Source of the DNA: Mytilus californianus
Taxonomy: Eukaryota
DNA: 64,000 nt
Assembly (NCBI RefSeq): GCF_021869535.1
Contig: NW_026262712.1
Coordinates: 27,404,001 to 27,468,000 of the forward strand
Direction of reading: 5' to 3'
Shown here: piece after piece, positions 6,498 to 38,950 of the stretch
Layout: every line of letters begins with the position of its first letter
Numbering within the stretch: the first letter of the stretch is position 1
Made by a program: the position numbers and the translations under genes
Notes under the pieces: model-generated
The model's database searches: none
What the model saw: only the letters and a program-made list of their open reading frames with translations
Told to the model about the DNA's origin: nothing

Positions 6498-9288
6498 AAT
6501 GGTTACCAAGCTCAATAAAACAACTGTCAAACAAGCACAGTAAATTCAAACGTGTTCATTCTTCCCGTGAGAGTGAATGGCAAAGCTGACACTTTTGAAA
6601 AGTTGGTATTAAATCAGATATTGGACATTTGATGGCATGTCCTTCCAAATGTAGTGTAATTGGTTTACATGCATTTAACTAGCCTTGCAAAACCTCAGGA
6701 AGGCAAAATTAGGGCCTATGGGTAATTTAATTGTTTAAACTAATATCAATAAAATAAATCGATAACACAATAAAATGTTATTACATCATCGAGCGAATTT
6801 TGACTGTTTCAGATTTTATCAGCCATTCACAACAATTACTTTTCATGTACACTTTTACAAATATTACCCAGAATGCATTAAGATTCCGCGAATTGTAACA
6901 AGTATTACATTTAAATGCCATAGTTATTTAATATTGGAATTCTCGCAGACAATCAGTATTCATTACAAATTTACAATAGAATGTATATTCGATAGAGCAT
7001 AGACTGAATCAGTAACTTAACTAAGGAAGTTGATGTTTCAGTTAGAAGTGCTACAATATCACTAGTTAAATAACACATAACAAAAGATAACTGAACACTT
7101 TTATGGGGAATTTAAGCCATGTATAATCAAGTAAAATTTGAAAGAATTATTGAGCTTGTTTGGTAATTAACAAAGAGATGAAGGTGATATGCAGATTTCA
7201 TAGACTATAATTTGCGGCTGAACGTCAAACAGCCAACCATCACTATCATAACCATCGAAGACTTTATCCATTCATCATCACATATTTCTTTATATTTAGC
7301 TATCACATTATTATTTATAATATCCATACAGTCTTTATTATAACTATTTAAACTTTTGTTTCAAGTACCATAAATTAACCAAAGTATAGAGTTATTAACT
7401 CTATCAAGAGAGACATGGAATTGTAAAGTAATCAAGAGTAAAACTCACATGAATGTACTATGTATTAACGCCACACATATTGTTATGCCCCAGCCGTAGT
7501 CAACGGGGGTTGGGGGCATTAAGTGTTACCCTTGACCGTCCGTCAATCCGTCTTGCCGTCTTTTCGGCCGTCCGTCCGTCCCATTTTCGTTTGTTTGTAG
7601 CTTGAATGGGGGCATTTTTGTCCTCGGACACATTCTTTTTAATTTTTTATTTTAAAATATTTCTTCCTATGTTTGTGTCATAACCCAAACCTTTGCAAAA
7701 TGACGCAAAATTTTGCGAAATAAGACAGACATTTTGATTTTTATTATAATTCATTAAGATTTGTTTATTTTATGACTTTATTGAATTTACATTTCAAAAT
7801 TTTTTTTATAATATGAATCGTAGTATTTTGTAAATATTTCATTTGCATGCCAGTGTACCAGTAAAATTTGGTTGTGATTTAGTTAATATAAGTACCAAGT
7901 CATTATAATTAAGATACTTATAAATAAAGGAATACTTGTGTCGCATTTATTCACAAATAAAGAATAATTGTATATCAGAAAATTATATAAATTTAACATG
8001 AAAATAGATATTTGGTAATGAGCAATTTTCAATGGAACGGACAGGATTTTGAAAATTTTGATTAACGGAATGTGGCAAAGCAGAGATCCGCAAAACAAAA
8101 CAAAAAAATAAAAGTCAAATAGACAAAATGATCTTACGGCTTTAAAATGAATTATTTAAAATGACAAATTTTGAATTTTGATGTAAGAAAGCGTTATTTT
8201 GAAATCTCAAAATACGATAAAGATTCTTCGACAGAAAATCAAGGGGTTATACATTTCAGTCTAGTAAAGGATCTTTTTTCCACGGTAGCAATTTGAATGT
8301 AAAATACATAATAGTAATAATAATAAAAATTAAAAAAAACTTTATCTTGTTCATTTATCTCATGAGCATAGCTTGTTTGGATCTAACTAACCTTACAAAG
8401 GCTCAAACGATCGCTTACTTTTGAAGTATATAAAACTCGGCTACATTAACAGGGTAGGGTTTTAATTTACTTCGGTACAATTTCAATTGATTTAATTTTC
8501 TTTGTAATGTTCTTCTACTCATCATTATTCAAGATTACATCTTTGTCTTTTTTGTTTTTGGGATGTATAAATACCCTGGAACGTGCGGTCTGTGTTTTTG
8601 TTAGATGTTTTTTCTGCTTTGTATCGATCTGATGAGTTGAGCCCTTTTCAACGGATTCTTATAGTTTGTTCTTAGGTTGTACTGTTACACCACTGCCCCA
8701 GGTTAGGGGGGAGGGTTTGGCAAAAGCAAACTAGGTTATCCCCGCCACATTTTGTATGTGTCTGTCGCAAGTCAGGAGCCTGTAATTCAGTGGTTGTCGT
8801 TTGTTGCTGTATATCATATTTGTATATCGTTCATTGTTTTGTACATAAATCAGGCCGTTAGTTTTCTCGTTTCAATTGTTTTACATTTTTCATTTCGGGG
8901 TCTTTTTGTAGCCGACTATGCGGTACGGGTTTTGCTCATTGTTGAAGGTCGTACGGTGATCTATAGTTTTTAACTTCTATGTCATTTGGCCTCTGGTGGA
9001 GAGTTGTCTCATTGGCACTCATATCAAATCTTCTCATTTTATAAACACTCAAGCATTTCTAACACATGTGCAAACAATCTATTTAAATTAAAATGCATAT
9101 CTATATTTTTAACTCGCGTGTTCGTACATATACGATAACGAAATCAGAGATCTATAGTTTAATCAGATTGAAAGTGCAAAGAGGGATACAATGTAATACA
9201 CGAAGCCTCCTCCATTAAAAACAGCTGATTTCCTTGAAACTTAAATAAGAAATAAGATAACACAAATGTTTGCACTATAAATACAGAA

Positions 9289-12287: not shown

Positions 12288-13967
12288 CTATTTTCTATCT
12301 ATTTTGTACAAAAATGCCTTTTCTTTGCTCTGTGCAACTAACAACATATCTCTTGTTTTGTCATAATGCAAGGCCTGTGCAACAGAAAGTCCGTCGCTAG
12401 AAAATAAAAGTATTCTATGCTGCTTACCACAAGGCGAGATAAGTACAACTGAATTATTTGATAGAACGAACAAAAAATCATCGTCATCTTCCGAGATTCC
12501 TAGGGGACGTTACAAAATATTTTCATCTTTAAAAGTCCATTTAAGGGCACCCTTGTTGTCACAGCATGTTACAGAATCGCCAAAAGTTGAAGTATAATGA
12601 ATATTCTTTCCATTTGTGTCAACATACGAAAACAACAAGTTTGCATTTGTAATGGTGTTAATAGTTTCAGTGTGAAGGTTTAACATCTTCATTTCTTATC
12701 CTGTATAAAATATCACGTGTCCGTTTCGTTCTACTAAACCATAACAGTTGGAATCCAATGGGACGAACTTCTTTATCTTCCTTTCCTGAATGTCGACAAT
12801 ACTGATACCAGTTTTACTGAAACTTGACGATACAATAACCGTGTTTTTTATTGTTCCATTTACAACATCAAATGCACCTGGTAAGTTAATTTCAAAATCT
12901 GTGGAACCGTCGGCTGTTATCAAAATTAACTTATTCCTGTCAATGCAGGTACACGCAATTCTACCATCCGGAAGAATACAGCAACCTCTTAAGTTCGTAG
13001 ATGTCGTATTTATCGTATCCTGCAACAGAGCTGTACTATTTTCAATAGTTTTTGTTCTTATTTTGGGAATAATTATTTGAGCTTGCTTTTTCTTTCTTTC
13101 TCGTTATGCAGCTTTTGTGGGCTTCAATACTACTGCTATTTCCCTAAATTTTTGTACCTTTTTCATGGTGGTTTCAACAGATACATTGATATTTGAAGTG
13201 ATGACTCTTATATTCACTTTGTCTCCGTCAAGGCATGATTGAGTGAACTCTTCTTCTTTAGCTAAATCCTGCTCTATTTGTTTTATTGACATAAATGCCT
13301 GGAGGTCAGAAGCATGCTGCGTGATATTTGCAATTGAATTCTGGTACTTTGTTAAATTATTCTCCTTTTCCTCCAATGTTTTAAGCAGCTGAGAAACTTT
13401 TCTTCTTTCTGTTTCCTCTACTTTTTGTAGTTCATCTTACAACTTCTTTTGTATTTGATTGAGATGGGTATCAATCTTAAAACGAATTTCCTGAATCTGC
13501 TTTTCAATCTGTTTTCTGTTTTCTGAAAGTGTAGTAATATTTCCCCTGAAGAATTTTTGTATTTCTTTAATATTATCTACAACTTCATTTAGTGTTTCCT
13601 CTATTTCTTGGAAAGAGGTGGAAGTCTTAGTTTTCTTGATTATGTCGTCGAGATTGACAACTTCATTGCATCCTTTATGAACTTCAATTGCATACTTACC
13701 ACAACATGGCATTCCGTGGTCTTTGCAGTATAAAAGAAACTTTTCATCATGCTTGGTACATGACTGAGGGATCTGTAAGACATCTTCGGGCAGTTTATGA
13801 TATTCAGTTATTGGTATCGTCTCTAAGTGTCTAGATACCTTTGCTAAGCTGTGATGTTCTCCACAACCAGAACAAAATCCTTCATCACACTCCGGGCACC
13901 AGGCTACGGATGGTTTGGTAATATGACGAAGATCACATATACCACAGACATGTGTTGCTCTAGCCAT
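12288..13967 (-). pseudogene. TRIM-like gene (two B-boxes, coiled coil, NHL-like beta-propeller), single coding exon, four in-frame TAA stops
   Basis: ORF pieces 13437-13967, 13104-13376, 12696-13025, 12510-12692 and 12288-12473 are all in one frame (1680 nt). N-term CGICDLRH..WCPECDEGFCSGCGEHH and CTKHDEKFLLYCKDHGMPCC are B-box-like; C-term LRGCCILPDGRI, RPLGISED and LHYDKTRDMLLV are propeller-like. Splice acceptor TTTTTATTTACAG (AG at 13986-13985) just upstream of the ATG. Confidence 0.85.
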
Positions 13968-16109
13968 TATCTTACTGGTTTATACTGTAAATAAAAAGTA
14001 CATTCGATATGGACATTTCTAAAGAATTAATGTCAGAAAAGAGAACTAAATTCCAAATACTCTCTTTCATATACTAGTTACATAAGATGCAATTCAACAC
14101 TGAAACATCAAAGACGGAAAGGAGTTTAAAGTTCTTTTATGTTGAGGATTTACTACAAGTATCACAATCCCTTATCATTGATCAATGATTTATGAAAATA
14201 AGTTCATGTTCTGATATACCCTTCCAGATGGACATGTTCATCTAACATTGACTATATGCTCAAATTTAATTGAATAATTGACCTATAACTTATAGTACTG
14301 CGATCTTATATTGTCATACAAACTTAACGTTATTTGATAAATTATGGAAATTAAGTCAGGTAAAGTAAAAATAAAAAGTCAGACACACATATACTCCTAC
14401 CATTTTATGGTACCATCAACTTATTAATACCAATATCCTGTTGAGTATTTATCAATGAACCAAATATAAACAATTTATCAATCTTAACACCAGTCTTGAA
14501 AGTATTGAACAAATAAATGCAAGCATATTGGAGTTAGTGCGCCATTGCTTATACATTATTTCAAATCTGACGGGACCGTAACTCTGTAATGACCACAAAA
14601 AAAACCCAATTAAAATAAAGAGGCAACCCTGTCTGTCAATCTAAATTTTACGGGAATTGATTAGAGTAAATAAGATATTTTGTACGAAGAAGTGTTGGAC
14701 ATTTGGACAGTCGGACTACGGTATACCATAATGCATCCTGTCTTAGACTGGTATTTAATACCACACATGATAAACCATACAAAGAAGGAATATAACACCT
14801 TCCACATATTTAAACAACCACATAAATCACATCTTAATTAAAAGTATGGTACTACGAAGCACTCTGAAGCTTTTTGGAAAGCTAAAACTTGTGCAGAATT
14901 GTGTTTCTGAAAACGCTAAAATGTTGTAGAAGAGAGGCAAAAGATACCAATCTCACAATTTGAAAAAAACTGACAACCCAATGTCATAAAAATAGAAAAA
15001 AGACCAAAAGACATAGAAATCATAATAAAGGGAAATAACCGTAGCAATGAAATGTCTGAAAATTTTGGTGGATAGTTTTGTTCTATACTTGATTAAATTT
15101 TAATAATATTACGCAATTATTTTCATTTATCCCTTTGTCGTGTTTCGTTATGTTGGCCTTGCAAGTTAATTGACTTTTATTTATCGTTTTAGTTGTTCGA
15201 ATTAATTTGGTTGTTTCAGGGCGTAATGGCTCGAGTAATGGGTAAATAATGGGTAAAACATAACATGTTAATTTTTAATGTCTAGTTAAGTCTTAATTGT
15301 TTTAATAGGTTCATCGAAAGAGATCTAAGAAAAAATGGCACGCGATCCGGTTCATGATTTTTGATTGATTTTTGATTGATGAAAGTGAAACAACATTCAT
15401 AAGTTTACCTACATGAACGACCGGTTTGCAAATTATTTAATAAATCAGGATAAAAATATGTCATGAGTATATGCACATCACATTTGAACCCCGGTAATAA
15501 CCTGAATCAAGCCGTATTTTAACACAAGCTGCGACACAAAAAGATACAAGACAAATTCTAACAAGGCCAAGGAGGACGAGGCAGAGATATAGACAAGGAA
15601 GGTAAACAGGTAAAAATAGAACTTGATCACGTGATTGTCTAGAAATATGGCTACAATACAAACTTGATTATGTTTAAACGGCGGTTCAATTCAAATTCTT
15701 TATAAAAATGAATATACACAATTACATTAATTAAACGAAAGTGTGCCATAATATTTACATACAGAAAAAAAAAATAACCGGGAAAAGTATAAAATAATGG
15801 AACAGTATACAATAACTGAAAATTGCTGATAAATTACTATACACTTATAATAGTTACAATCACCTACAAGGCCAAGTAAAAATACAAACTATTTCCCCAT
15901 TCTTTTGGTGAAGCAGTTTTATATTTTCTTATTTCGTAAGGCAAAGGATTAAAACTTGAAAGTTATACTAAATTTCGAAAACAGTTTTTTTCAGGGAACA
16001 ACCATTTTCAGGATAAAAACATTTAATTTAAAAAAAAGGAAAGGAGGGGTGGGGGGAGGGGGGTCGTATGTTAAGTGTTATTTGTATTTGTTTGACAATG
16101 TTTTCCATA

Positions 16110-16242
16110 NNNNNNNNNNNNNNNNNNNNNNNNNNNNNNNNNNNNNNNNNNNNNNNNNNNNNNNNNNNNNNNNNNNNNNNNNNNNNNNNNNNNNNNNNNN
16201 NNNNNNNNNNNNNNNNNNNNNNNNNNNNNNNNNNNNNNNNNN
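16110..16242. other. Assembly gap (133 N)
   Basis: Run of N. Confidence 1.
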
Positions 16243-17108
16243 CAAGTTATTGTTTTTTTAACCTGTCGAAATCGAATATTGTTTTTTAATGGTGAAAGTT
16301 AAAGGTGTATTGTGCATTTCAGTGAAATCTCTAGCAGCAAATAAAGCTAGTATAAACTTAAAACTTATATATCTTAAATGTGTGCAGACAGACATTGGGT
16401 ATGTAATTTAAATGGACAATGCTTTAAGCGGTCATTTCAGTACCAGAATCTAAGACAAACGAGACGATTTTGATTTTGAAATTATCAATTCCTCCCACCT
16501 AAAAAGCAATATACCAACTTCACCTGCATATGGGATATACATTTCCCGGCAACTCATTCGGCATACAAGAGCTTGCAGCTGCTACACAGACTTTATAAAA
16601 CGCCACCAGTGTCTGAGCAGAAAGTTGACGAACCAGGGTTATGTCAAAGAACGAACACTGTGCGGGACAAATTTGCCATTCCAGAATTGGCAAATCTGAC
16701 TTTGTCGGTTTACAAGATATCAAAAAAAAAAATTTTGCCCAGCGATAGATTATTAAAAGATTTAAAAAATCCCATATGTCCCAACTTGTCACTGTTGTCA
16801 CTGTTGTCACTGCAGCTGTTTTTAGTACATTTCCCATGGAAAATTTGAGAATTCCCATGGGAACATTTAAAGTTCCCAAGGGAAAAATTACTTTTCCCAT
16901 GGGAAGTTTAGAGTTCCCATGGGAACTACAATTTCCCATGGGAACATAAGTAAATTGTTTGTTCCAATGAGAAAAAAATCGTATAACACACAATTATGTA
17001 TTTCTACAATTTAGATACAAAAATATTTAACCCATGATAACTTAGTCAGTTTTGTGAAATTGCTTCATTCATGCAATGAGAGGAATTTCTTTTTATGTTT
17101 TTTTAATT

Positions 17109-17243
17109 ATTATATCACTTCCCATGGGAAAAATGATCGTTCCCATGGGAAAATATTTTTCCCATGGGAACAATATTTTTTCCCATGGTAACAATAATTT
17201 TTTGCATGGGAACGATCATTTTTCCCATGGGAAGTGATATAAT
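17109..17243. repeat. 135-bp inverted repeat built from TTCCCATGGGAA units
   Basis: Arm ATTATATCACTTCCCATGGGAAAAATGATCGTTCCCATG pairs perfectly with CATGGGAACGATCATTTTTCCCATGGGAAGTGATATAAT. Confidence 0.9.
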
Positions 17244-17321
17244 TACGATTTTTTCTCGGCATGTTTAATCGAAAATTAACCACTATGTCTCAAAGTGCAT
17301 ATTGAGTAATAAAAATTAAAC

Positions 17322-17531
17322 TACTGTAAATTCAGAAATTATTGCCATGTTTTTGTTATTACGAAAATTGTGACAGGGTTATAATCACAATAATTTAAAC
17401 TTGCATCTTGAAATTTTTTATATGAATTAAAAAGGATTTTTCTAAATATCGCAAAAAATAAAATCGCATTTTAGTCTGAAATGACAAAATAGCACTTATA
17501 AATGCAAGCAATTATTTCTGAATTTACAGTA
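17322..17531. mobile_element. TA-flanked MITE (Tc1/mariner-type ends), ~210 bp
   Basis: TACTGTAAATTCAGAAATTATTGC ... GCAATTATTTCTGAATTTACAGTA terminal inverted repeats; same end type as the MITE in the capsid gene. Confidence 0.75.
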
Positions 17532-19519
17532 TATAGTTTTGCATATGTCTTACACACATGGTCAAAGTTTTTCCATTTGAATGTTTTTATGTTTTTTCAT
17601 GCAGACCTTTTATAGCTGATATGTTTTGCTCAATGTTGAAGGCTGAATATCATTTCCAATTAGGCAAACATTACAATTCATATAACAAATAAGGCACTTC
17701 TGTTATAATGTTTAATCTTTCACTGACAATAACACCATCAAGTAAAATGTATGATCACAAAAAACATAAAATAAACATGTAGCAATAAAATATCTAAGGT
17801 CATAAGCAAGTGACAATTAACAGGTCTTGTATAAGAATATAACAAATCTACTTTTCTGAGATGTTTTATAAGGTTTAGAAAATTGGTTATGCCCTACAGC
17901 TTTCCATCCTGCTAAGGCTTAAGTATATTCTCTTTAACTGCAATAATTAAACCTTTATAACCTCTTAGATATATGCCATGTATTGACAGTTATCAGAAAA
18001 ATCTTACTTTAAATAACCTGATATTTTTACAACAAAATAGTATAACAAGAGTTCAAATGAAATAGCATGATGTCATCATAAAGTGAGAAATAGTAACTGT
18101 AAAAACATAAAATTTTATCATATGATTACTCATCAATTTAAGTGATAAAGAAAACTTTAAATTCTTTCATTTTCTTTTGGTTTTTAGTAAGTTCATACAA
18201 CAGCCCTAGTTTAATCTATCCTAGTATACCTAACAAACGTTACTAAATAAACTAACAAAAAACTGTTCTACAGAAGCATGAATTATACATAAAATAATAT
18301 AAAATTATTTATTTCTTAAGCAAAATAATATGAATGAAATGTTATGATCTAAAAAAAACCAGTTACAAATAACAGTATTTTACTGAATATCTATCCTTTA
18401 TCAACTAAATAAACATAAAAGCTTTGTTAGAAAATATTGTTGTTGTTTTCAACAAGGTTAAGATAGTACCGTTCACAACAAAAAAATGATAATCAGTTGT
18501 CTTATGAAAAGATATTTAAATATTTCTTATATAGTTAATGAATATTCAAATCTAGTCTGGAGACTTACACACTTTTTTCTCACTTCCTTGGCTAAATAAG
18601 TCATGTTTATAGGAAAGAAGATATTTTAGGAAACATTTCATACACCTCTTAACTAGATGCAATATTTTCACATGTATGTCATAACACAGATTGATATTTG
18701 GTGAAATTAATAGCTATATACAATTATCCAACATTAAAATAAAAAGGCAAAGAACATAAAACATAATAAAATAAAAGGCTTTGCTGAGCACAGCTTGATA
18801 TGACCGCAGAGGTCAAACCCTGAACAGTTTGGTCAAATTTCAACACTATATTCAAGCTTGAAATTGTCTGAATTCAGATTGTGATTAATTTTTGACATAA
18901 TAAAGGTTTCTGACACAAAATAAATGTGGTCAAAGATCTTAAAAATCTATTTCACAATACTGTGCATTTGAAGATTTTTTCTTGAAACTTTTGAAAATAT
19001 TTAAAATTTGAAAAATTTTGAAAAAAAAAAATAATATGAAACCGCATAAAAAAATCACCCCCCCCCCCCCCAAATCCCAGTCTTCCCTTTGTAGTATGGA
19101 ACCTTGTAGTACAATTTAAAATATATCAATACACTTTACAGGCATTTTGGTTCTCGGACATAAAAAATAGGGAAAAAGAATCTTTCTATAGGAAACGGGC
19201 CTCGTTTGTAGTTGTTGTTCATATCTCTGTATAAACCTTTTTTACTATTTTTCCACTTTATACATGCATCAATAAATAATAATTATCTGATCCATGCAAT
19301 GCAATACCTATGAATACTTATTAAAACTGATGTTTTCAGAAATCTACCAGGTTTTTTTACTTGTCAATTTGAAAACAACAACACGTATTTAGTTATTTTT
19401 GGGTTAAAAAAATGAATGATTCAAATGATATATATTATAGAAAGTAAGTAATCATTTTAATCAATAAAAAAAGGTTAAGATTGACCAACAAATTTAAAAT
19501 TATCTTTATATTTTTATAG

Positions 19520-22500
19520 GAAGGTACGTTTGGAGGGACCTTCAGAGAGAGATTGTACGTAGCCACACTGCCACAGTCGTGTTTTGAGATTGTTAGCGAG
19601 CTAGAAGATAGTATGACCCAAGGGATGGTGAGGTCCTCGTATAAGACAACTCAACTGACAGGAGGCCTGTTCCAGTCATTTGTTGGCTTCAAAGAAGAGC
19701 GACCTGTGCGCTTTGCTCTACAGCAGTTGGTGAACGGCACAACTACAATGAAAGAATACAGGGAGAAAGGCAAGAGTTTAAAGGTAAAGATAAATAGATT
19801 TCAAATAGTGGACACACTGAAAATTTTGTAACAGTTGTCCACTAGCCTTGCTCATTTCCTATATAAGTACCTGATTGAAGTTTCTTTTAATAAATAACCA
19901 CAAAGCCTTTACGTGGTGTCTTGTTCCGTGTTCTTGTTCTGTCGTCTCTTGATAGCGTGCAAATAGAGGTCATAGTTTTGATCCCTGGACAGTTCAAACC
20001 TGTTTAACACTATGATAACTGTCTTGTTTTACAAACATAATTATTTGACTTAGTTTTTTTTTATAAAAAACAAAAGTAAACAGAGATGTTGGTACACATC
20101 TTTGAGGGCCACTAGACAATAAAATAAAGCTGAAAAGAAAGTCAAAATAAATAGCAAAAGTAAACATCTGATGTAATTGATCAGCCATAAGTCATTATCA
20201 AGACTCTGCTGATGTTATAAAAAAGAAGATGTGGTATGATTGCCAATGAGACAACTCTCCACAAGAGACCAATTGACACAGGAATTAACAACTATAGGTC
20301 ACCGTACGGCCTTCAACAATGAGTTTTGTTTATGAATCATTGTATTAATTGGTTGGAGGGGAACAATTATACTCCTTACAATTGACTGTATTTAAAACGT
20401 GTATATTAAAGTTATTTTCCTTCTTTCCAGCAATTTAGTTATTGATTGTCGTAACTCTTGCAGATTTTATTTTCAAATCTTCACCTATATAAGTGTACAC
20501 AATTAATATCAAAATATTAGTTACTTGCTTTTTCTGCATATTAAAACATTTATTTATTTGACAGAATACAAATTGCCTGCAAAATGATACAGAGGAGAGC
20601 AGACAGACTAGAGTATGTTTACTTTTAATTGTATAGTTACATCTAAACAGAAATATTAAACGCAAATAAAAAGAAAAAAACATTATTATTTTTCTAATTT
20701 CTAAGAAAAAACTTCTAAAAAAAAGTTGATAGAGGAGAACATTTATATTAGTTTTTTTTACTTTTGTCTTTCTTAAAAGTTTTGGGGTAATTTTGGAATT
20801 AAATGAAAGTTTAAGGACCTGTGATCACTGTTAATCCTAGCTTATTTTTTTGGTATGATAAAAAGTTGTGTGAAATTGAAATAAAAGGGCATATATTGCC
20901 TGTAGCTCAAATTGGGAGTACCTGCTTTTGTACTTTCTAGCTCATGGGAACCAGTGGGCTTATAAATGTTATTAGATGTATGGTAAAATTTTCTACACAA
21001 ACTACAATAAAAAAACTAATAAATATACAGAATTCTAACTTCTAAGAAAGAAAAGTTATAAAACTTGACATAATGGAACGCTGGAATATATCAACCAACC
21101 TAACGAATGAAAAAATACAACTTCCATATATATTCAAGAATTTGTAGGCACATTTTCTACAGAAAAATGAGGGTTAAACAAGGTTTTATAGCAAGCTTAA
21201 CTTCCTACTTGTACAAATATATTTGAAACATTAAACTTTTACTACAAACACCCAAGACAAAATATCATTGAATGCCTTAAATTGGTGAATTTATATAGTA
21301 AGCAAAGTAGCCATGAACTAGTAGATTGATACCTTAAACAATTAAGCAGATAACAGCAATGTTGTTAAGAATGCAGCAGCAAGGGGAGGAAATCATCTCA
21401 CTGAAAGCAGAAAATGGGATCTTAAAAGCTGAAAATGACAGACTCAAAACTTTATTGAGCGAGGTAAACATTGTCTTTTTTTAGTTAGTCTCTTATATTT
21501 TTTAAAACATTTTTTTAAGAAAAAACAATTTGCGTAACAGTTTAATGCATCCTTGTAAGAGAAATAAAATAAATTAATGTAAATTGAAATAGACTTATAT
21601 GGACAATCTTCTAAACTGTAAAATCAATATATGTAACTTAAAGAAATTATTTCAAGAACTTTCTTATAAACAAATTAATTGTGACCTTTTGTTTTGTGAC
21701 TTTTTTTTGCTTACCACTTTAGAATACCTTCAAAATATTTTACAAATCAGCATGCTACCATGAAATTTAAAGGTCTTAATTGAATTAGAGGTTTACCAAA
21801 AAAAGAAAATTGTCAAAAATATCTTACAAAGATATCTTTTAAACTCATTATTAACATCAAATCAACATAAAAGAACAGCCATTATATTTATTGATCATAT
21901 ATATAATAGGTTTGAACGTTGTTTTTAATTTAAACTTGTGTATATATTTTTTCGTTTGGGTGTATTATATTTGCCTTTCGGGTTTATATGATCCATTCAT
22001 CCTATTTCGACGATTCAAAATTCAAGAGTCTATCCTAAATTGAGGTAAAATATATGGTCTTCCAATTAACGTTTAGATTAGTAACATCACTGAAGAGACA
22101 TTAATTGTCGATATCAAATATATATACAAAAAAAAAGAATTGCAAAACTAAACCCATTTGGTACATGTCTTATCTATTATCGATATCAAATATGTATTTT
22201 ATTATGTTGAGAACTTATGTTTTTTATTTATATTTCAACAGGTAGAGCAGACCAATGCTTCCAATGAAGATGATGATACAGACAGTAACAAGGATGAGGT
22301 AATTGTTTTTTAATTCAACAGTTACAAGTATGAAATTTAACATGATTAGACTTATAGTTGTTGCTTTATCAATTTACAATATTTATGATTGAAAATGCAC
22401 CATTATCACTTACATATGACAATACTGTTTTCAAACAAGCATAGGATATTGTTGTACTTGTATGTTAATTAACAATAATATTAATATATCATATTTGATG

Positions 22501-23321
22501 ACTTTGTAATTGTTTTATAATTGTGAAAGGCAGAAATCTATGGGTTTTGAACTACCAGATACACCATTTCATCTTTTTTGTTTTTTAAATATTTTAAAAG
22601 AGTGAATCTAGTCATTTATTCTGTTTTATCATGCTTTTTAAGCCAGTCTGATAAGAAGTTAATTTTATCCTCTGAGTATGGTCAAAAACAATTGAAAATG
22701 TCTTGAAATTGAATGCCTTGGGTTTTTTTTATAGGATGAACTTGCAGTTGGCACAAAAATGTCTACAAGATGGTCAGATGGCAGTTTTTACAATGCTGTC
22801 ATCATCAGCAAGAGAAAAAATGGTAAGTTTTCATTGACAAAAACAAAACATCAATCAAACACAAAGATAATTTAAAATTTAATTGATGCAAAAGTTGAAC
22901 TTATGTCATTTAAATGGCTGATATGCATTAAGTGAATAAAAGCATAGGTGGTTTATGCATCAATGAGACAACAAAATATGAAAATTAGACATAATAATCC
23001 ATCGTAGCTTTTTCAACTAAATAAAATATTCAGTATGATACGCAAAGCTTCAAATCATCCTAAATCTCTTTACGAAATGAATGAAAACAAAATTTCTCCC
23101 AAGATCTGCCATTAAACATTATAAATAAATTTAAAACAATATTATTGAATATTAGAGAATTTATCAATATTTTAGTTTAAACAGTAACTCTGTTTTCTTT
23201 AACTTAATTCCTTAAATTATTACATATATTATTTGAAGTGTTCTCCTTTTCAGGTTATTATGTAAAGTATTCTGATGGGCGGAAGAAAGTTGTCAGTAGA
23301 CGAGACATCAAGATGTTATAA
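19520..23321 (+). CDS. Spliced transposon cargo gene (5' part missing or decayed): helical domain + coiled coil + acidic linker + C-terminal Tudor domain
   Basis: Exons with AG/GT borders: 19520-19783 (EGTFGG..GKSLK), ~21350-21463 (MLLRMQQQGEEIISLKAENGILKAENDRLKTLLSE), 22242-22298 (VEQTNASNEDDDTDSNKDE), 22735-22822 and 23254-23321, giving DELAVGTKMSTRWSDGSFYNAVIISKRKNGYYVKYSDGRKKVVSRRDIKML*. Phases 0/0/1 are consistent across the last three introns; AATAAA at 23453. Linkage of the 19520 exon to the 21350 exon is uncertain. Confidence 0.75.
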
Positions 23322-26300
23322 AATCCAAGTAGAAATGAAAGTTTTTGAAGACATTTGACTATTTCTATTATTAGTTAGAGAGATGGACAATATAATTTTG
23401 AAAACTAATGTGTAACTATATAATTGTATAACAAATGAATTACATTGTATCTAATAAATTTTGCTACGTAGAAGTATTTGGTTTTGAATTTCTTTTTTTA
23501 TCAACAGAAAGTTGAAAAAGTAGAAAAATATTGTCGGAGCTGTTTCTCATATTGGGTGACAGAAAGATATCATTGTTCCTCAGTATTAACATTTTTCTTT
23601 ATGCAATTATCAAGCCCTCTGCAATCTCTAATTTAAAGAAATAGATCCATAAAATGAACAAGTGATTTATATTGGAATAAAAGACTGTAAAGGTGCAAAC
23701 AAAATAAATATTACACAGGAAATGTTTGTCAATCACAAAACACACACAGACACACAACTTATTTTTTAAACTTACTTCTCATTGCTTCATATTTTACTGG
23801 ATAATAAGAGTTTCTAGAAGGTGCAACTCTCAATAGAACTCGAGTGAGTGTTGTTTAGTCGCAAATATTTCATGCATGTTCAGAATGAGTCCATTCTATA
23901 CAAAACCATACTGAGTTCTTGCAGAGAATCTGCTGATTTTAATAATTTAACCTAAATCCAGTATTTGCAACAAATTGTAATTTTTCTGGAAAGAAAATTC
24001 AAATGAAAATTAATGTTCCTATTGTAATATTATATGTTCCCATGGGAAGAAACAAATTGTTCCCATAGGAAGAAACAAATTGTTCCCATGGGAAGAATAA
24101 ATGTTCCCATGGGAAGAAAAATTGTTCCTATGGGAAGAAAAATTGTTCCCAACGGAAGAAAAATTGTTCCCATGGGAAGAAAAATGGTTCCCATGAGAAG
24201 AAAAATGGTTCCCATGGGAAAAGTTAATTCCCATGGGAACTTTTTATATTCATCTTTTCCCATGGGAACTTTAAATTTCCTATGGGAACTCTAAACTTCC
24301 CATTGGAACAGTCATTTTTCCCTTGGGAACTTTAAATGTTCCCATGGGAAATTATAATATTCCTATGGGAATTCTCAAATTTCCATGGAAAATGTACTTT
24401 TAATCAGCTGCAGTGACAACAGTGACAACAGTGACAAGTTGGGACATATGGGATTTTTAAAATTTTTTAAATATCTATTGCTGGGCAAAATTTTTTTTTG
24501 ATATCTTGTAAACCGACAAAGTCAGATTTGCCAATTCTGGAATGGCAAATTTGTCCTGCACAGTGTTAACGTCTCGTCCTTTTTCTAAAAATGTTGATCA
24601 GAAGATACCAAGACCTTGTTGATAAATATTCCTTTTCGTATCTTTCGCCTCACTTTTAAAGTACACTATTAAACATATTAGTGAAAGTACAGACTGCCAA
24701 GAGTAAGGTCTTGTTTGGCAGATTTAAATATGTTGGAAATCTATATGCTAATTTTAAGCTCAGTGTTGGTTCTTATATTCAGCAAGTTTGCATTTCCTAT
24801 ATGCCTTTGCAGAGGGACAACAAAAACTTCAATTTGACATAATTTATTCAGTTTTGATATTTTATTTTTTTCTATATTCTTTATTAATGCTCCTTTAGCC
24901 ATTGATAAATAAAACTTCTAAAAAAATGTGTTCAATTGTTTGTTTCCTTACGATATGCACGTGTAGTGCATGTATTCTAAAAAAATAATTTATTAATAAT
25001 GGAAAAAATACCATGGAAATGGCAAGGCATTTAAATGTACATTATCTTTTTTAAAGTTTTGTAAGACAATTTATTTCTTGTTGCAAATTGGCGTACCTCA
25101 CAGTTATCACTTGATATTCTCGCTTTATTGTATCCTGTTCCAGAACTATATCATCTACATATCAGTAAAAACAAATTTGGCATTTTACAATGCATATAAA
25201 AATACCACTGACAATTCTCCGCTCATTGTAACTGTAATGATTGAAAAGTGTTTGACATCCCTAATTGATTGACGGTTGTTTTAAAATTGTTATCAATCTC
25301 AGTAAACAACTGTCTAACAAACACAGTCAATACAAAGTGGATCAATCTTCCAGTTAAAATGATTGACAAAACTAACTTACACTTTTTTTCAAAACAAGTT
25401 GATATTCAATTAGATAATGAATAATCGATGGCATTTTCAAATGCAGTATAATTGGTGAACATTCATTTCACAAGTCTTGCAAACCGACAGAAATGCATAA
25501 TAGATGGGAGTTTTTAGCATTTTTTCGGTTCATTTATCTTAAGAACTCACGTGTATTACCTGCATAAATAAAAGGAATGGTTGCTGAGTGCTTGTTATCT
25601 CATATAAATCAAATGTGAAGAATCATAGGAATTATTTTTTCAAACCTCAAAATGGAAATATTTTACGTCATTGTCAGACCGAATTTCGGCTTTTTCAGAT
25701 TTTATCAGCCAATCACAACAGTTAATTTTTATGTACACGCTTAAAAATATTACCCAAAATGCATAAAGATTCTCAAACGGCGAAATGTAACAAGTATTGG
25801 CATTAAAATACCACATTTATTCAATATTATTGGTGTATTATCGACAAACAACCAGTATACATTACAAATTCACAAAATGATATATTTCTGGTATTTTTCC
25901 ATTAATTTGACCCGATTTGTCATAGCTTAAAACAGCTTGGTACTTACGGAATCTGATGTGTAACCAAGGAAATGCTGTAATATCTATTAAGTAAAAGTAG
26001 ATCATACATTACAGAAGATGACTTGAGGACTTGTGAGAACGCACTCGTAGAGCCATGCATAATCTAGTGAAATTTGAAAGTAATATTTAGCTTCAATGAA
26101 GTATTTTCCTAATTTACAATTATTATCTTCAATAAAATTGTTTCCTTATTTACAATATTTGCCTTCTTTGGGGTTGTTTTCTTAATTTTCAGAGGAATGA
26201 TGAAGGTTTTACAATTATATACTTTACACAGTTCATAGACTTGACCCGTTCTGCAACACATATGTCTATATGTATCTACCGATTATTATTTATGATATAC

Positions 26301-33445: not shown

Positions 33446-36400
33446 ACTTGTTCTGTTCGAATTCTCAAGGAATAATGAAAAGTCACATGACAAACGAAGC
33501 ATACATTTTGTTTCATTGATGACGCATTAGGAAGCAATATCAACACAGCAGCAAGATGAGCAAAACAGCATATATCATTACGTAACAGTTGTAACTACAC
33601 GAATATTAAATAGATATAGAGGAAAACAGTCATATAAACATAAACCAGGTACGACCTTCTTAATTCTATATATCCGTATGTATCTGGCACTTTGACATTG
33701 TCTCTGAGATGAATTCAAGAGTACTTTCCAATGAATAAACTAAATGCTTCCCTATTTTGGCATTCATCCAATACATTATATCCATACGACATACAAATGC
33801 AGAGACATTTTTTTTTATATCATGAAGTTAACGTTAGCAATGGTTAAAATACGACATAATATAATTTTATGTTCTCATATTTCCCCTCAGTAAATATGTA
33901 GGACTCTAAAGTGCGATGGGAACGCTAAAGTACGATGGTCACGCTAAAGTGCGATGGTCTGCGCTAAAGTGCAATGCCTCCATACGCTAAAGTTCGATGG
34001 TCCGCGAAAGTTTAGACGTAACAAACGTAGTTGGATTATGACGTTAACATTCGTTTATACAAACCAAAAATGTACATGCCGGAAGATAAATTAAGAATAT
34101 TTGAATAAAAAAATTTAAACCAAATGTCCATGACTTTGTTTCAAACTTAACATTGCTTTGTTGGCTGAAGCAAATGTGTTTTTTTTCGGGTGCTGGAAGA
34201 AGGACTTGTGGCCTGCAGCCGACCATTTTACTATATAGATATAAAATAGTATACGCATAGGTATCCTGTATCCTGCTTCTATTGGAAGCGAACGGATACA
34301 TTTAAATCATTGTTTACGTTGCAGTTTACTTTGCAGTTCCGGTTAAAACTTTGTCAATTTTATTGAAAAGTAACGTCGGTAATATAAAGGTAAATGTTTT
34401 TAAGCGTAAATTATAAATTGTCGGCTAAAACATAGATTGTACATTGGAGGAAAATATAACATGTATTTGTACTCGTTACGAAAAAGGAGAAAGCTCGGCT
34501 TCAAGCCTTTTACAAATAAATGTTACTCATTCCGACGACGGTGGAGGGGGAGGGGGGGGGGGATTGGTTAGTTCAGGTTATTGATAGACTGTGTGAGCGG
34601 CAAGCTACACCAATTATCCAAATATTCATTACGTCCGGGTTGTTAAAAATTCATTTAACAGGAAATACAGTATTTTGTGACACCTAAATTACCTTTTAAG
34701 CAATTATTACGTGGTCGGTCTTCTAAATTTAGAAACAATCACTTAAACCTACCGGTAAATTATAAAGCCTATCACATATATATGCATACTACCTATTGCA
34801 AAAAGATTAAATTAATTACTGACTATTTTTTTAAAAATCAATGTATTTTAACGTTTTAATCACTCGAACCTTACCCTATTGGTCCATTGCATTTTAGCGT
34901 GATATGCAATCTAGACTGGTTCCCGATCGCAATATTCAGTATGTTACACATATACCAATATAACGACCGGGACGGACTTTACGTTACCTTGAACTTGTTT
35001 ACAACGTTCTTCAAAATCGGAGGTATTTCTAAACCAAACGCCGTCATTTGGCGAACTATTGAATGATGGCGTCCCTGGAAACGCCCCTTCACAGGATGAA
35101 TTCCGATATCAATCTCTCGGAGATGTGACTGTCATTTAAATATTATAATTTAAAAGATAAACAGGAACAAATAAGAATAAAAAAAAAAATGTTCCAATTA
35201 AAACAATTTTTTGATGCCAAAACTAGGACCTGAACAGAGAAATGAAATATAAAGGCCACACTGCGCAAAACAGTAAATAATCTTCAGATCAATGAAGGAC
35301 TACTGAAAACCTAAAGAAGAAGAAGAAGACATGAAAGGACCTGAGATTCTACGATCATACTTATTCAAAATTAAATCACTGTTTTATTTTTCAATGGATT
35401 TCCTTCAACTCTAGATTTTGTGAAACGAAAAAATTCTATATATAAATAATGTTCAAAAAGAAATTATGAAAAATATTGTTGTCAAAACTCGGACCTTAAC
35501 GGGAAATTAAAATATCTGCTGAATTTTATTTTACTTTTGCTACAACATTTGGTCAGGTTTTGTTCAGAGTTTTCAATCTGGTAAATAATAATTATTCATG
35601 AAAAGTTACTAACAGATGATGGACTTCATGGGGTTTGGAATAGCCCATTCTAGCTTTTGTCAAGGTCCATATTATTATTGATAGTAGTGCTCTGGCAATA
35701 TATTGTCCTTGATCACTTGTAAGAAATTAAGAAATTTTGGCAAAATTCTCAATTTCCTAGCGCAATAACTCTCACAAATTTAATACCAACAGCAAGAGAC
35801 TCAACTTGAAATCTCACTTATAAATATAAGATTACAAACCAAAAATAGAAACATCTCAAACTGAAACTGAAGTGACAAGGATAGACAGATGGACGGACAG
35901 ACCAAAAGAAAACATATAAAGTCATGGTGTTTATAAGAACACTTAACACATAACATAGGTAAAATCTCTTTGTTCTTATTGTGCTACAATCTGGATAATG
36001 CACATCTAAGGTGTGCATTAACTACCTCAGATATACTCACGTGGATATACTGCACAGTTCAAAAGTACTCTTACCTTTAGGGGCGGATCCTGGATTTTGT
36101 AAGGGGTGTAATTCCATAAAATTAAAAAAATATCACCGAGTGTAGCGAGACTAAAAACCAATTTTGATGATTTTAGTGTCAAAATATGAAATAGAAAGTG
36201 TTTCTCATTCCTTAAACTAGGACAAAAAATATTTGATTTTGTGTACAGTGCAAATCTTAAATAAGTGCTTCAAAGTCAAGCCAGATAATAACTATTTTAT
36301 TTATTTCTGCCAAAAAAGAAATGCATTTTTGAATATCCAAATCAATGAAATCTGATTTGGATTACCCGGTAGTTTTTGTGCTCAATGGAATTTATTACGA

Positions 36401-38224
36401 CTTGTTGAATATTTATTCCTATTAAGTGACTATTTCTGGATCGAATTTAAAGAAGATCATGTCCAAGTGTGTTTCAAAACAGGGGCGGCGGATTAGTTGC
36501 AGATTAATCAGACTTCGTTTAGATGGACATGTCTTCAAAAATTGATACAGTAGGAAAAAAAATTGGGGGGACTGGGGAGTTAAAGATTGGAAAGTGAAAC
36601 TTTTTTTCTGTTTATTTAACTTTCTAAATTTAGGTATATCTCTCCTCGGTTCATCTTTCTCTACGCATATTATTGAGGGAAAGAAAAGCAATTAATCAAT
36701 ACTCAATAACCCTTTCAGTTTTGATACACCTATTTGAAAGTACACCAAAACGGAACTAAAACTGTAGGAGATGTAGGTTAATAAGACAGCAATCAAACGA
36801 AAAAAACATCGAAAGACATCTAGCGGGCAACATACAGTTTTCAAAAATAGTTATAGGTGTCTACACAATATGTCAAATTTTTAATCTTTACTAATTCATA
36901 TAATTATTGAGAATAAATCTAACAGAAACGATAAAAAAATCTACCATTAAATCGCAATTCTTCAAATAATGTAACAATTTAGGAAGAAGCCTAAATTTAA
37001 AAAAGTTAATAAATTAAAACTTACCAACCTTTTATTACTACATAATTAAAGGCGTCTTTACCCCGCTACAAGAAACTTTCCTTGGAGCCGTGGATTGCGA
37101 TTTATCGTCCGCATATTTCCAAAATGTACAAGTAAATTGGTGGCGTCATGTGTTAAAACAGTTATTGGCCAATCGAATCGGTATATATTATTTACTATGC
37201 ATGGTTGGGATGACCCTTTAACCCGAACTCCTTTAAAGATACAGAGTGATTGACAGAATGGGCAGTAATTGACATTATAGGAGAAAAGGTGAGATATTTG
37301 CTTTTGCTGCGTTAGTTTAAAAAATAAAGTAGAACATGAAAAGTCGAACATATTATATGGTATGTATTAGAGGAAAAGAAAGGGCTCCAGAGGGGTTCTC
37401 CTAAGATCAAATGGTCACTTTCAGAAATTTCTTCAGTTAACCAGGTCATTTTAGGCAAACTATACAGTTCTAAACTGATCTGATTCTCGGTTTTAAACAT
37501 TTCTAAAGTATCAAACAAAGCAAATTAAAGCAAAACGGGCATAACTCGGGAACGGTTAAAGTGACGCCACCAAAATTCAAACTTGATCTCTGTTTTGTGG
37601 TAATAAGTATTGTGTATATGCTTCATAATATTTGGTTGAGGCAAACTAAAGTTAGAAAATGGAAACCAACTTTGGGACGTAATAACATACAGACTGACAA
37701 GGGTAAAACTTATCCCCCCCCCCCACCCTCATTGCGGCGCGGGCATAAAAAGTGTTTATTTTAGTTATTGCCCTTGTACCTTGGATAGATAGAATATGTG
37801 CAACGCGGGGGACAAATTTGTTCTTTATTTCACGTCATGGGACACTGAAGTCTTGTTTTCATGAACGATTACAGCTTGATGGGACTAGAAAGCATTGACA
37901 ATTACAAAGCAAAATAAGATTGGCATGTACAGAGACTTAATGTCTCTGGTATGTACTGCGCTGTTTCTAGTGTTGCAGTTAGAAATAAGACCATGTTTGT
38001 AATTTGTCTTCGAATTAACTGTTAATCTTGTATTTATGCACACCTTCTCAGCTTAATGGTTTGATTCCAAATCTCGAGATTAATTCACAGTCTTTTATAA
38101 AGGTTACAGAGACGGATACACGTACGGTCCGAGGAAATAGGGGGCGTAATTCATTAAAAGGTTGAAAAATCGTTGAGAGTAGCAAAACGATTTTTTTGAA
38201 GATTCAACCTAAAAAAATGATACA

Positions 38225-38950
38225 TTTTCATACGCCCGTTTACGGAACGTATTATGTATGGTATACCGTTGTACGTCTGTCCGTCCGTCGTCAACATGTC
38301 GGACATTAACTCAAAAACGCTTTAACCAATTTGCATAAAACTTTGGGGAATTGTTTATATCTTTTGACATGAGCTCCCTTTCGTTTTTTATGAATTTAGA
38401 TTTTACGTTTCCGAGTTATGGTATTTTTTTCATTAAAAAAGGGGGATTTTCCAGTTTCGGACAATAACTCAAAAATGCTTTCACCAATTTGCAAGAAATT
38501 TAGGTGAATTGTTTATATTTATTGACATGAGCTCCCTTTCGAAATTTATAAATTTTAGATTTAACGTTTCCAAGTTACGGGGTTTTATTCATTAAAAATG
38601 GGGGACAGTTTTCGGACAAGAACTCAAAAATGCTTTCAGCAGGTCTAATGAAACTTTGGTGAATAGTTTATATCTATTGATGTAAGCCTCATTTCAATTT
38701 TTATAAATTTTAGGTTTTACGTTTCCGAGTTATGGGGTTTTATTCATTAGAAAAGGGGGGATTTTCCAGTATTCGGACAATAACCCAAAAATGCTTTCAG
38801 CAGTTCTCATAAAACTTTGGTGAATTGTTTCTATCTTATGACGTAAGCTCCCTTTCGATTTTTAAAAATTCTGATATGATAAAGAGAAGTAGTTGAACTT
38901 TATTCTTTGAAAATGCGACGGGCGTATCATGCGCTCATGTTCGCTGTTTA
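38225..38950 (+). mobile_element. HINE-type element with four ~158-bp tandem core units
   Basis: subTIRs ATACGCCCGT / ACGGGCGTAT, GTCC microsatellite, units GGACAATAACTCAAAAATGCTTT at ~38300, 38459, 38614 and 38775. Confidence 0.7.

Follow-up and report, generated by a model that had tools for sequence, protein, structure and literature searches.

A coiled-coil and Tudor-domain gene in a probable family of mussel and oyster cut-and-paste DNA transposons, and its truncated remnant in Mytilus californianus

The CACTA element En/Spm of maize encodes both a transposase (TnpD) and an accessory protein (TnpA) that binds the sub-terminal repeats of the element. The bivalve family described here appears to share this general plan, as a probable two-gene cut-and-paste element with long ends packed with short motifs in both orientations and a spliced accessory gene that does not encode the transposase. 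The two systems differ in their termini (AACAC(T/A)G in bivalves), in the duplication at the target site (a candidate 4 bp versus 3 bp) and in the transposase (a DUF7869 candidate versus Transposase_21/24). In addition, the bivalve accessory protein contains a Tudor domain and shows no relationship to TnpA, and its binding to the repeats is a prediction. Readers of methylated histones are found on other mobile elements, such as the chromodomain integrases of chromoviruses and MAGGY, where they are thought to steer integration, whereas the bivalve reader is placed on a protein separate from the enzyme. The fusions between transposons and chromatin readers that have been surveyed involve mainly Chromo and PHD domains, with Tudor unnamed among them in the part of the survey cited here (bioRxiv 10.1101/2021.11.30.470311). 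Gypsy-10_Ec32 of Ectocarpus was described in 2025 as the first reported Tudor-carrying transposable element; it is a brown-algal LTR retrotransposon in which the Tudor is fused to the integrase, and ParB-like accessory proteins have also been reported in algal transposons (PMC12477816). While both Gypsy-10_Ec32 and the bivalve element encode their own Tudor-type chromatin reader, the latter is a DNA transposon with inverted ends and carries its Tudor on a separate accessory protein. Our literature search found no description of a DNA transposon that carries an accessory gene for a Tudor protein; as far as that search reaches, an accessory protein with a Tudor reader is new for a DNA transposon, although two-gene DNA transposons were already known. 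If the reading proposed below is true, the family would parallel, among DNA transposons, the chromodomain integrases and viral episome tethers, and chromatin reading could let a cut-and-paste element choose or protect its insertion sites.

The window, a 64-kb stretch of Mytilus californianus DNA, contains a 7.9-kb element (16654-24567) with inverted ends of approximately 590 bp (Table 1), and the DNA transposon with inverted ends proposed in the original prediction is supported. Both ends start with AACACTGTGC, contain TCCCATGGGA palindromes at 19-21 bp spacing and have AACG immediately outside, and the outer 170 bp of the two arms are 94-99% identical. The left arm consists of the terminus AACACTGTGC, three copies of a 9-bp TTGTCACTG repeat and two TCCCATGGGA palindrome arrays. 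Readings as a RAG/Transib-type element (CACAGTG heptamer, 5-bp duplication) or as a CACTA element (3-bp duplication) do not agree with the flanks of the window element; the 4-bp reading is the only one that does. As anticipated, no transposase was found in the window, and tblastn searches with DUF7869 pieces detected no remnants of that family in the window or in three related loci (L002, L007 and L008).

Table 1. Positions of element and gene features in the window.
Feature	Position	Strand	Remarks
Candidate 4-bp target-site duplication AACG, left	16650..16653	.	Same bases follow the right end (24568-24571)
Left terminal inverted repeat	16654..17243	+	Inverted-repeat pairs I1-I6; arm-to-arm alignment; tandem arrays of 21-bp period
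Sub-terminal region peculiar to left end	17244..17844	+	Recurs with terminus only in M. edulis L005 (26169-27902); no coding signal found in this region
Unrelated high-copy repeat	18600..19135	.	Read and contig depth very high in every run; at breakpoint of similarity to full-length copies
E1	19520-19783	+	88 codons; most of conserved helical N-domain; residues 131-218 of orthologue P0030
107-bp high-copy repeat	20217..20323	.	Intron 1 insertion unique to this copy; huge depth; missing at matching position in L001, L002, L007 and L008; copies in L003-L005
E2	20565-20612	+	16 codons; matches P0002 exon (L002 13009-13056)
63-bp deletion site	21366..21370	+	Four-way alignment with L002, L008 and L007
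E3, remaining part	21371..21463	+	Start of long coiled coil; weak leucine-zipper and bZIP-type Pfam matches
E4	22242..22298	+	Acidic linker; matches L002 14772-14843, which has 15 nt extra
E5	22735..22822	+	First half of Tudor; aligns to strands 1-2 of P0030 barrel
E6	23254..23321	+	Second half of Tudor and stop TAA; junction as in P0030
Right terminal inverted repeat	24020..24567	-	Palindrome arrays and terminus; alignments to left arm and to relatives
Candidate target-site duplication AACG, right	24568..24571	.	Matches left side

The exons between these ends are the rear two-thirds of the coiled-coil and Tudor gene of a mussel/oyster family of cut-and-paste DNA transposons, in agreement with the earlier proposal that the transposon carries a spliced gene of this kind. 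Six exons, all in phase 0 and with AG/GT borders, can be read directly from the window sequence; the predicted junctions 21463/22242, 22298/22735 and 22822/23254 recur in P0030 and in paralogues by alignment, and the peptide originally quoted is correct. E1 is 97% identical to M. coruscus P0002 and belongs to no Pfam family. A gene start at 19520, however, is contradicted by the relatives, whose first approximately 130 codons are missing from the window: searches across all 64 kb with P0002, P0030 and P0032 (tblastn) and with a DNA pattern from the start of L001 did not find the N-terminal exons. Similarity of the window to L002 and L008 begins at 19135, and that to L007 begins at 19223. Lost with the 63-bp deletion are the native polypyrimidine tract and AG acceptor as well as 6 nt at the start of E3, and in intact copies the ATG at 21359 lies within the intron. 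With the transposase, the promoter region, the first approximately 130 codons and the native exon-3 acceptor all deleted, the window gene is a decaying remnant rather than a working gene, and the element that contains it is a truncated and apparently silent one. Compared to its sister copy, the window gene has a neutral-looking dN/dS of about 1.4 (16 differences), and the youth of the window copy is probably the sole reason that its last exons have stayed open.

RNA data agree with splicing of the gene in other copies. One RNA contig from run X13 (record 9, 512 nt) joins E1 to E3, with 56 nt between them that fit E2 plus 6 nt, and appears to continue into E4, with an insertion after 22268 at equal depth (6.23). 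The full-length copies L002 and L008 characteristically carry this 15-nt insertion, and the contig therefore derives from an intact-type copy and not from the window copy. The expectation of spliced reads was thus realized for the intact-type copy (E1 to E3 and apparently E4) but not for the window copy, which had zero reads; in run X21 of the same study, of which about 6% was sampled, window-copy reads were zero for every exon. Runs X1 and X2 behave like DNA, since their contigs pass through introns.

Annotated full-length relatives match the window exons, including the 342-aa M. edulis protein P0030, mislabelled 'PHF20'. The family is small, with 13 hits that all came from bivalves, and has a conserved architecture. 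A word-based protein search with E1 returned a single 87-aa fragment, and a profile search with the full family alignment gave 7 matches and was swamped by low-complexity words. In intact relatives the accessory gene has 9-11 exons and lies just inside one element end. The protein has a conserved helical N-domain, a coiled coil of approximately 65 residues and a single C-terminal Tudor of the PHF20/PHF1 type; in the model of P0030, the E3 region falls inside a 67-residue helix. The M. edulis and M. coruscus copies show purifying selection (dN/dS 0.17 over 867 nt).

The comparison covered nine related loci, drawn from one oyster and four Mytilus species. The family terminus occurs 0.5-1.7 kb after the stop codon in all nine, a palindrome array precedes it in eight, and similarity among copies ceases exactly at the terminus. 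The general form of the terminus is AACAC(T/A)G, and its first 20-24 bases are conserved between oyster and mussel; the palindromes are 10-12 bp long, have the core TCCCATGGGA and show a spacing of about two helical turns. Divergence of the gene from one subfamily to another is accompanied by divergence of its palindromes and termini. Members of the first subfamily (the window, L002, L008 and L007) are alike from the gene to an identical last base, 24567 in the window, beyond which their flanks are unrelated. The second subfamily (L003, L009 and L010) terminates throughout at AACAC(T/A)GGACAC, while the third (L004 and L005) has its own palindrome, of the TTTCCTCAGAGGAAA type, and its own terminus. 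Flanks differ at five ends of the window's subfamily and at three of another, and orthology of the copies was rejected because the right flanks are unrelated in every pair. A second complete derivative, L010 of M. edulis, is 9.3 kb long with inverted ends of approximately 900 bp (6749-7629 and about 15100-16052) and AAAA on both flanks, and its interior contains DUF7869 fragments beside the 3' half of the accessory gene. The candidate target duplications thus come from two complete elements, AACG in the window and AAAA, in AT-rich DNA, in L010. On the original question of whether homologues always lie between the inverted ends, the terminus is present on the downstream side in 9/9 loci, but the left end of the long copies was not found within 10 kb upstream of L002, L007, L008, L003, L006 or L009. 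None of these loci yielded a complete element that has an intact transposase as well as both ends.

In the oyster (Saccostrea) locus L006, an opposite-strand DUF7869 gene is followed by the family gene, the palindrome array and the terminus AACACTGTGCCGGA. Three exon pieces of this DUF7869 gene match the Pfam family with E values of 7.7e-29 to 7.2e-13, the upstream opposite-strand gene of L003 also matches DUF7869, and at both the oyster and the M. galloprovincialis loci the family gene has such a gene upstream of it. DUF7869 contains three conserved acidic motifs, which we take to be of the DDE type, making it a candidate DDE transposase on sequence grounds. It had no match among solved structures, and our literature search found no paper mentioning it; this uncharacterised Pfam family gains a candidate role as a transposase. 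A large upstream ORF in L007 that was considered as a transposase proved to be a nested LINE.

The Tudor assignment made from the window exons was confirmed with the orthologue P0030, the model of which stood in for the joined exons of the window (81% identity for E5 and 61% for E6 by tblastn). Its C-terminus folds as a five-strand Tudor barrel of approximately 50 residues (strands at 299-341) that superimposes on PHF20 Tudor2 (3qii) with a Foldseek probability of 1.00 and an rmsd of 1.0 Å over 51 residues at 37% identity. The same barrel is shared with the Tudor2 of PHF20 and PHF20L1 and with PHF1, PHF19 and MTF2 (rmsd 0.9-1.0 Å over about 50 residues, 30-37% identity), while the bivalve protein differs from this group in having one Tudor, no PHD finger, AT-hook or zinc finger, and an unrelated remainder. 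VIA Z scores to TDRD3, MTF2, PHF19 and LBR were 9.4-8.5. None of the Pfam Tudor-clan models exceeded its gathering threshold with the window exon, P0030 or P0024: E5 alone matched Tudor_2 with E = 4.8e-4 (20.3 bits versus a cut-off of 31.4) and Tudor-knot at 0.014, also sub-threshold, P0030 reached 22.0 versus 31.4 for Tudor_2, and P0024 scored exactly at the gathering score for LBR_tudor (22.0 versus 22). Throughout the family, and in the window exons, the aromatic positions W (or Y), Y and the aromatic of V-K-Y/F are retained along with the D of the DG turn; the aromatic positions align to PHF20L1 in the HMMER alignment and presumably correspond to the cage residues of PHF20, in line with the earlier statement that the cage is retained. 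A single canonical Tudor with nearest relatives in PHF20, PHF1 and PHF19 points to methyl-lysine as the probable ligand, and, from its model, the domain does not resemble the extended, PIWI-binding type of Tudor. Methyl-arginine is also a possible ligand, since the fold matches to TDRD3 and SMN are just as good.

The N-domain was modelled with a pLDDT of 86.7. Ten of the 12 matches at Z >= 2 in a second-look fold search were ParB, Noc or Spo0J DNA-binding domains (Z 5.5-3.1). These matches are weak (Noc 5.5, ParB 5.2 and KorB 4.5, over about 100 residues at an rmsd of about 4 Å), and Pfam and PDB profiles detected neither sequence similarity to ParB nor a ParB/Srx N-terminal domain. The modelled resemblance to the helix-turn-helix DNA-binding domain of ParB and KorB is thus weak and unproven. 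The genomic arrangement is similar to that of ParB, KorB and SopB with their parS or sopC arrays, in that a gene for a predicted dimeric protein lies directly upstream of an array of short palindromes; however, with Z of 3-5.5 only and no sequence similarity, the N-domain is not a member of that group on present evidence.

We consider it likely that the window element is an internally deleted, non-autonomous copy of a two-gene bivalve cut-and-paste transposon with a Tudor accessory protein that is predicted to bind the ends and to dock on chromatin. The two genes of the intact relatives would be that for the DUF7869-type candidate DDE transposase and the accessory gene. The accessory protein would dimerise via its coiled coil and bind the palindromic arrays at the element ends, in a manner that may resemble TnpA of En/Spm or ParB on parS sites, and through the Tudor the complex could attach to methylated histone tails, which would bias the landing site or the packaging of the element. 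It is possible, though doubtful, that this mussel and oyster lineage has its own tethering module, in which a dimeric ParB-like palindrome binder, a coiled coil and a Tudor methyl-lysine reader tether either the excised element or the transposition complex to a given histone mark. The constant position of the gene beside an end, the co-divergence of palindromes and termini, and the conservation between mussel and oyster provide a testable case for chromatin reading by a cut-and-paste element.

There are several alternative explanations for these observations. It is very unlikely that the gene is a host fragment acquired in a single event, by Pack-type transduplication into a non-autonomous element with inverted ends, or merely lies between two unrelated insertions of a small inverted-repeat element. 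Every full-length relative, in Mytilus and oyster alike, has the same terminus at a similar distance just beyond the gene, with similarity lost exactly there, the diverged paralogues show co-diverged termini and palindromes, and no parental gene without ends was found among the nine homologous loci; these findings outweigh the lack of a transposase in the window fragment and of a left end in the 10 kb upstream of the long copies, which speak for a capture. A domesticated host gene family of old transposon origin, in which arrays and termini are fossil or regulatory and copies arose by segmental duplication, is quite unlikely. Copy boundaries coincide with the terminus to the base in at least seven loci with unrelated flanks, including a 96.6%-identical M. 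edulis and M. galloprovincialis pair, and in two derivatives both inverted ends are present, flanked by 4-bp repeats. Domestication could account for the small annotated family (13 representatives), the RefSeq models with isoforms, the conserved intron-rich structure, the strong purifying selection and the damage to both M. coruscus copies, but the conservation of the first 20-24 bases of the terminus between oyster and mussel is as expected if a transposase still uses the site.

A different function for a transposon-borne protein must also be weighed. Anti-silencing accessory genes exist in transposons, as in the VANC genes of VANDAL elements, and the single Tudors of TDRD3 and SMN bind methyl-arginine. 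The bivalve protein could likewise counter host silencing, either in a VANC-like way or as a decoy for PIWI methyl-arginine marks, instead of binding ends and targeting insertion, and the high rank of TDRD3 and SMN in the fold search (Z 9.4 and 8.2) is consistent with this; we regard it as unlikely. The Tudor sequence is nearest to methyl-lysine readers (37% identity to PHF20 Tudor2 and 30% to PHF1), and its model comprises the 50-residue barrel only, without the extended Tudor/SN-like flank of PIWI-binding Tudors. Furthermore, palindrome arrays adjoin the gene in 8/9 loci, and together with a dimerising coiled coil they fit the binding of DNA ends better.

Some paralogues, such as LOC143062814 of M. 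galloprovincialis, could be domesticated genes, and the annotated copy number looks low. For the protein annotated as 'PHF20 [Mytilus edulis]', true orthology to PHF20 was considered and rejected: Pfam gives one weak Tudor and nothing else, and the model consists of a helical domain, a coiled coil and one Tudor, without the two Tudors, AT-hook, C2H2 zinc finger and PHD finger of PHF20. The label reflects the Tudor match only. Public annotation can be corrected accordingly for the family proteins, which carry host-protein labels such as 'PHF20' or 'Tudor domain-containing'.

The region is AT-rich animal DNA (G+C 28-30%) whose closest public sequences are from Mytilus. Direct reading of the sequence confirms six short open exons (E1-E6), and the C-terminal peptide proposed in the original prediction matches exactly. 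Window exons were searched singly, with natural database proteins used in place of the window's joined peptide. Among 1.84 billion representative proteins, E1 alone retrieved 13 matches, and the named sources were all bivalve. The best full-length family member is P0030, a 342-aa M. edulis protein annotated 'PHF20', which uses exactly the splice junctions predicted for the window and consists of ~130 N-terminal residues, E1, E2, a coiled coil, an acidic linker and a Tudor end, in that order. More distant members (29-45% identity) keep this architecture and an exon-rich gene structure; these are M. galloprovincialis LOC143062814 (P0019), M. edulis P0014 and P0024, Saccostrea P0007 and the transcript-derived P0004.

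Features of the window's element and its gene copy (positions within the window)
Feature	Position	Remarks
Inverted arm	16654-17243	exons lie between the arms
E1	19520-19783	phase 0, AG/GT borders, open
E2	20565-20612	phase 0, AG/GT borders, open
E3	end at 21463	phase 0, AG/GT borders, open
E4	22242-22298	phase 0, AG/GT borders, open
E5	22735-22822	phase 0, AG/GT borders, open
E6	23254-23321	phase 0, AG/GT borders, open; stop TAA
Inverted arm	24020-24567	exons lie between the arms

The reading of the C-terminal end as a Tudor domain holds. Pfam Tudor_2 matched E5 alone at E = 4.8e-4, below the cut-off; family members gave weak Pfam matches to LBR_tudor, Tudor_2, Tudor_3 and Agenet, and the family profile retrieved the Tudor structures of PHF20L1, PHF20, SMN and LBR (E 0.01-0.6). 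The P0030 model has five strands at residues 299-341 (pLDDT about 75-85), preceded by an unbroken 67-residue helix at 207-273 that constitutes the coiled coil. Tudor domains made up all 20 of the top Foldseek matches to this model, with PHF20 Tudor2 aligning at an rmsd of 1.0 Å (51 columns, 37% identity) and PHF1 and PHF19 at 0.9-1.8 Å, and an independent aligner gave Z 9.4-8.5 for TDRD3, MTF2, PHF19, ARID4B and LBR. The aromatic positions, also expected to be retained, are kept in the alignment both across the family and in the window exons. The annotation of P0030 as PHF20 itself can be ruled out, since the protein has a single Tudor domain and none of the other PHF20 domains. Folded alone with ten relatives, the N-terminal domain is confidently modeled as helical (pLDDT 86.7, pTM 0.81). 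Three structure searches with this model gave no strong match; the best were almost all ParB-family DNA-binding domains (Noc, Z 5.5; ParB, 5.2; KorB, 4.5; Spo0J-parS, 4.3; SopB, 3.6), each with ~100 residues aligned at an rmsd of about 4 Å. Sequence searches returned no support for this likeness, and a ParB-like nature of the modeled domain is offered as a lead only.

Both arms of the 7.9-kb window element begin with AACACTGTGC. In each, TTGTCACTG occurs three times, and the palindrome TCCCATGGGA, repeated every 19-21 bp, forms two arrays. A candidate 4-bp duplication is seen in two elements, as AACG on both flanks of the window element and as AAAA in M. edulis L010; an assembly gap lies in the window near 16110-16240. 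Three other copies belong to the same subfamily, two from M. coruscus (L002 and L008, 89-94% identical) and one from M. edulis (L007, about 80%), and their similarity to the window begins at about 19135-19223 and ends at the base equivalent to 24567. Past this terminus, the right flanks of all four copies are unrelated over 5-10 kb, which rules out alleles or orthologues; the shared boundary therefore marks independent insertions. M. edulis L005 holds a fifth such end, which includes the left-specific sub-terminal sequence and again has a different flank. At L005:26149-27902, the right terminus of a P0014-type element directly adjoins, with base precision, the broken inner side of a left-end fragment from the window's subfamily, apparently through insertion of one member of the family into the other. 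The loci examined yielded no full-length autonomous element.

The Tudor gene is integral to this element lineage rather than a one-off capture. The alternative raised with the original prediction, a gene captured once, is contradicted by further subfamilies that possess both the gene and a terminus of their own, with gene, palindrome and terminus co-diverging in each. The P0019 subfamily (L003 from M. galloprovincialis, L009 from M. californianus and L010) shares the window's palindrome core at a spacing of 19-20 bp and ends in AACAC(T/A)GGACAC about 1 kb past the stop codon; its copies diverge exactly at this terminus, even in a 96.6%-identical pair. The P0003/P0014 subfamily (L004, L005) differs, its palindrome being of the TTTCCTCAGAGGAAA type and its terminus AACAGT(A/C)TCCGGGAC. 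In the oyster locus L006, the region 1.2-1.7 kb beyond the stop codon holds a TCC-N4-GGA palindrome array and the terminus AACACTGTGCCGGA.

The uncharacterised Pfam family DUF7869 is a candidate transposase because of its position and its motifs. In oyster L006, a DUF7869 gene (three exon pieces, Pfam E 7.7e-29 to 7.2e-13) lies upstream of the family gene on the opposite strand, as it does in L003, and the block common to L003 and L009 reaches into the neighboring DUF7869 gene. L010, a second complete derivative (9.3 kb, inverted ends of about 900 bp), has the 3' half of the Tudor gene joined directly to DUF7869 gene fragments. In addition, DUF7869 contains three conserved acidic motifs, read as a DDE-type catalytic set. 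No paper naming the family was found, and no solved structure matched it. Tandem units of ~52 bp make up a satellite at M. galloprovincialis L001:14029-16485, with a fragment of a copy of the window's gene 5 kb away. Every unit translates to the DUF7869 motif …GHTHEDIDQMFSR, and the satellite seems to derive from a transposase exon.

The window copy itself is decayed. No counterpart of the first ~130 codons exists anywhere in the 64-kb window, and the alignment with full-length copies breaks off at 19135, beside an unrelated high-copy repeat (18600-19200) on which X21 RNA reads are strongly strand-biased (186 vs 7 in the peak bin). Exon 3 has lost its native acceptor and its six initial bases to a 63-bp deletion, the ATG at 21359 corresponds to intronic DNA in copies that are intact, and two small repeats have been inserted in introns. 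A 107-bp repeat at 20217-20323 is present at that site only in the window copy and is found again in L003-L005. In all four runs, RNA and DNA contigs cover it at enormous depth and show many 'goes back' joints; it is probably a SINE- or MITE-like element of very high abundance. The M. coruscus copies are also broken: exon 1 of L002 contains a stop codon and its E3 has lost 1 nt, and L008 has a duplication and is split by a 6.5-kb insertion. This insertion (L008:22108-28657) is 73-86% similar to window 35571-40697 and represents another shared mobile element.

The proposed dN/dS comparison among copies gave a divided answer. M. edulis and M. coruscus copies differ by dS 0.25 and dN 0.044 (dN/dS 0.17 over 867 nt), and the protein has therefore been under purifying selection across the lineage, while the 16 differences in 600 exon positions between the window and its sister L002 (dN/dS about 1.4) show no constraint at these small counts. 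The expected spliced reads were likewise found for an intact-type copy but not for the window. An X13 RNA-seq contig extends from 27 nt upstream of E1 through E1, 56 nt fitting E2 plus 6 nt, and E3, apparently continuing into E4; it has the 15-nt E4 insertion by which L002 and L008, both full-length copies, are recognised, so the spliced copy is of the intact type and not the window's. None of the reads fell on a window exon in a 6% sample of the same study's sole raw RNA run.

Accessory genes are established in several DNA transposons, including En/Spm (TnpA), Harbinger (a Myb-like protein), MuDR (mudrB) and VANDAL (VANC). The protein described here would combine two known jobs: that of En/Spm TnpA, which binds sub-terminal repeats and brings the ends together, and that of the integrase chromodomain, which chooses chromatin. 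The coiled coil would dimerise the protein, and the N-terminal domains of the dimer would bind the palindromes, which, at two helical turns apart, all face the same side of the double helix; methylated histone tails would be contacted by the Tudor domain. Alternatively, the protein may act in anti-silencing, or in a methyl-arginine/PIWI role. No published description of this element type was found in the literature. Chromatin readers on mobile elements are known chiefly as chromodomains and PHD fingers (bioRxiv 10.1101/2021.11.30.470311). According to a 2025 study, a Gypsy element of Ectocarpus is the first transposable element reported to carry a Tudor domain; that study also mentions that algal transposons have ParB-like accessory proteins (PMC12477816). 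A bivalve transposon survey covers Sola, Academ, Kolobok and other superfamilies with no mention of Tudor (PMC10294476).

An intact-looking LINE, with a 1182-aa endonuclease/reverse-transcriptase ORF and an upstream ORF, is nested at L007:2281-6414, ahead of the full-length gene in M. edulis. ORFs on the minus strand of the window (12696-13967) encode a B-box-like arrangement of cysteines and histidines, then a coiled coil and NHL-like repeats, as is typical of the expanded TRIM-like genes in bivalves. Outside the block shared with L008, two short ORFs at L002:3265-4359, one with a SAP-like start and the other with a hAT/TTF-type zinc-finger-like motif, are probably remnants of other elements.
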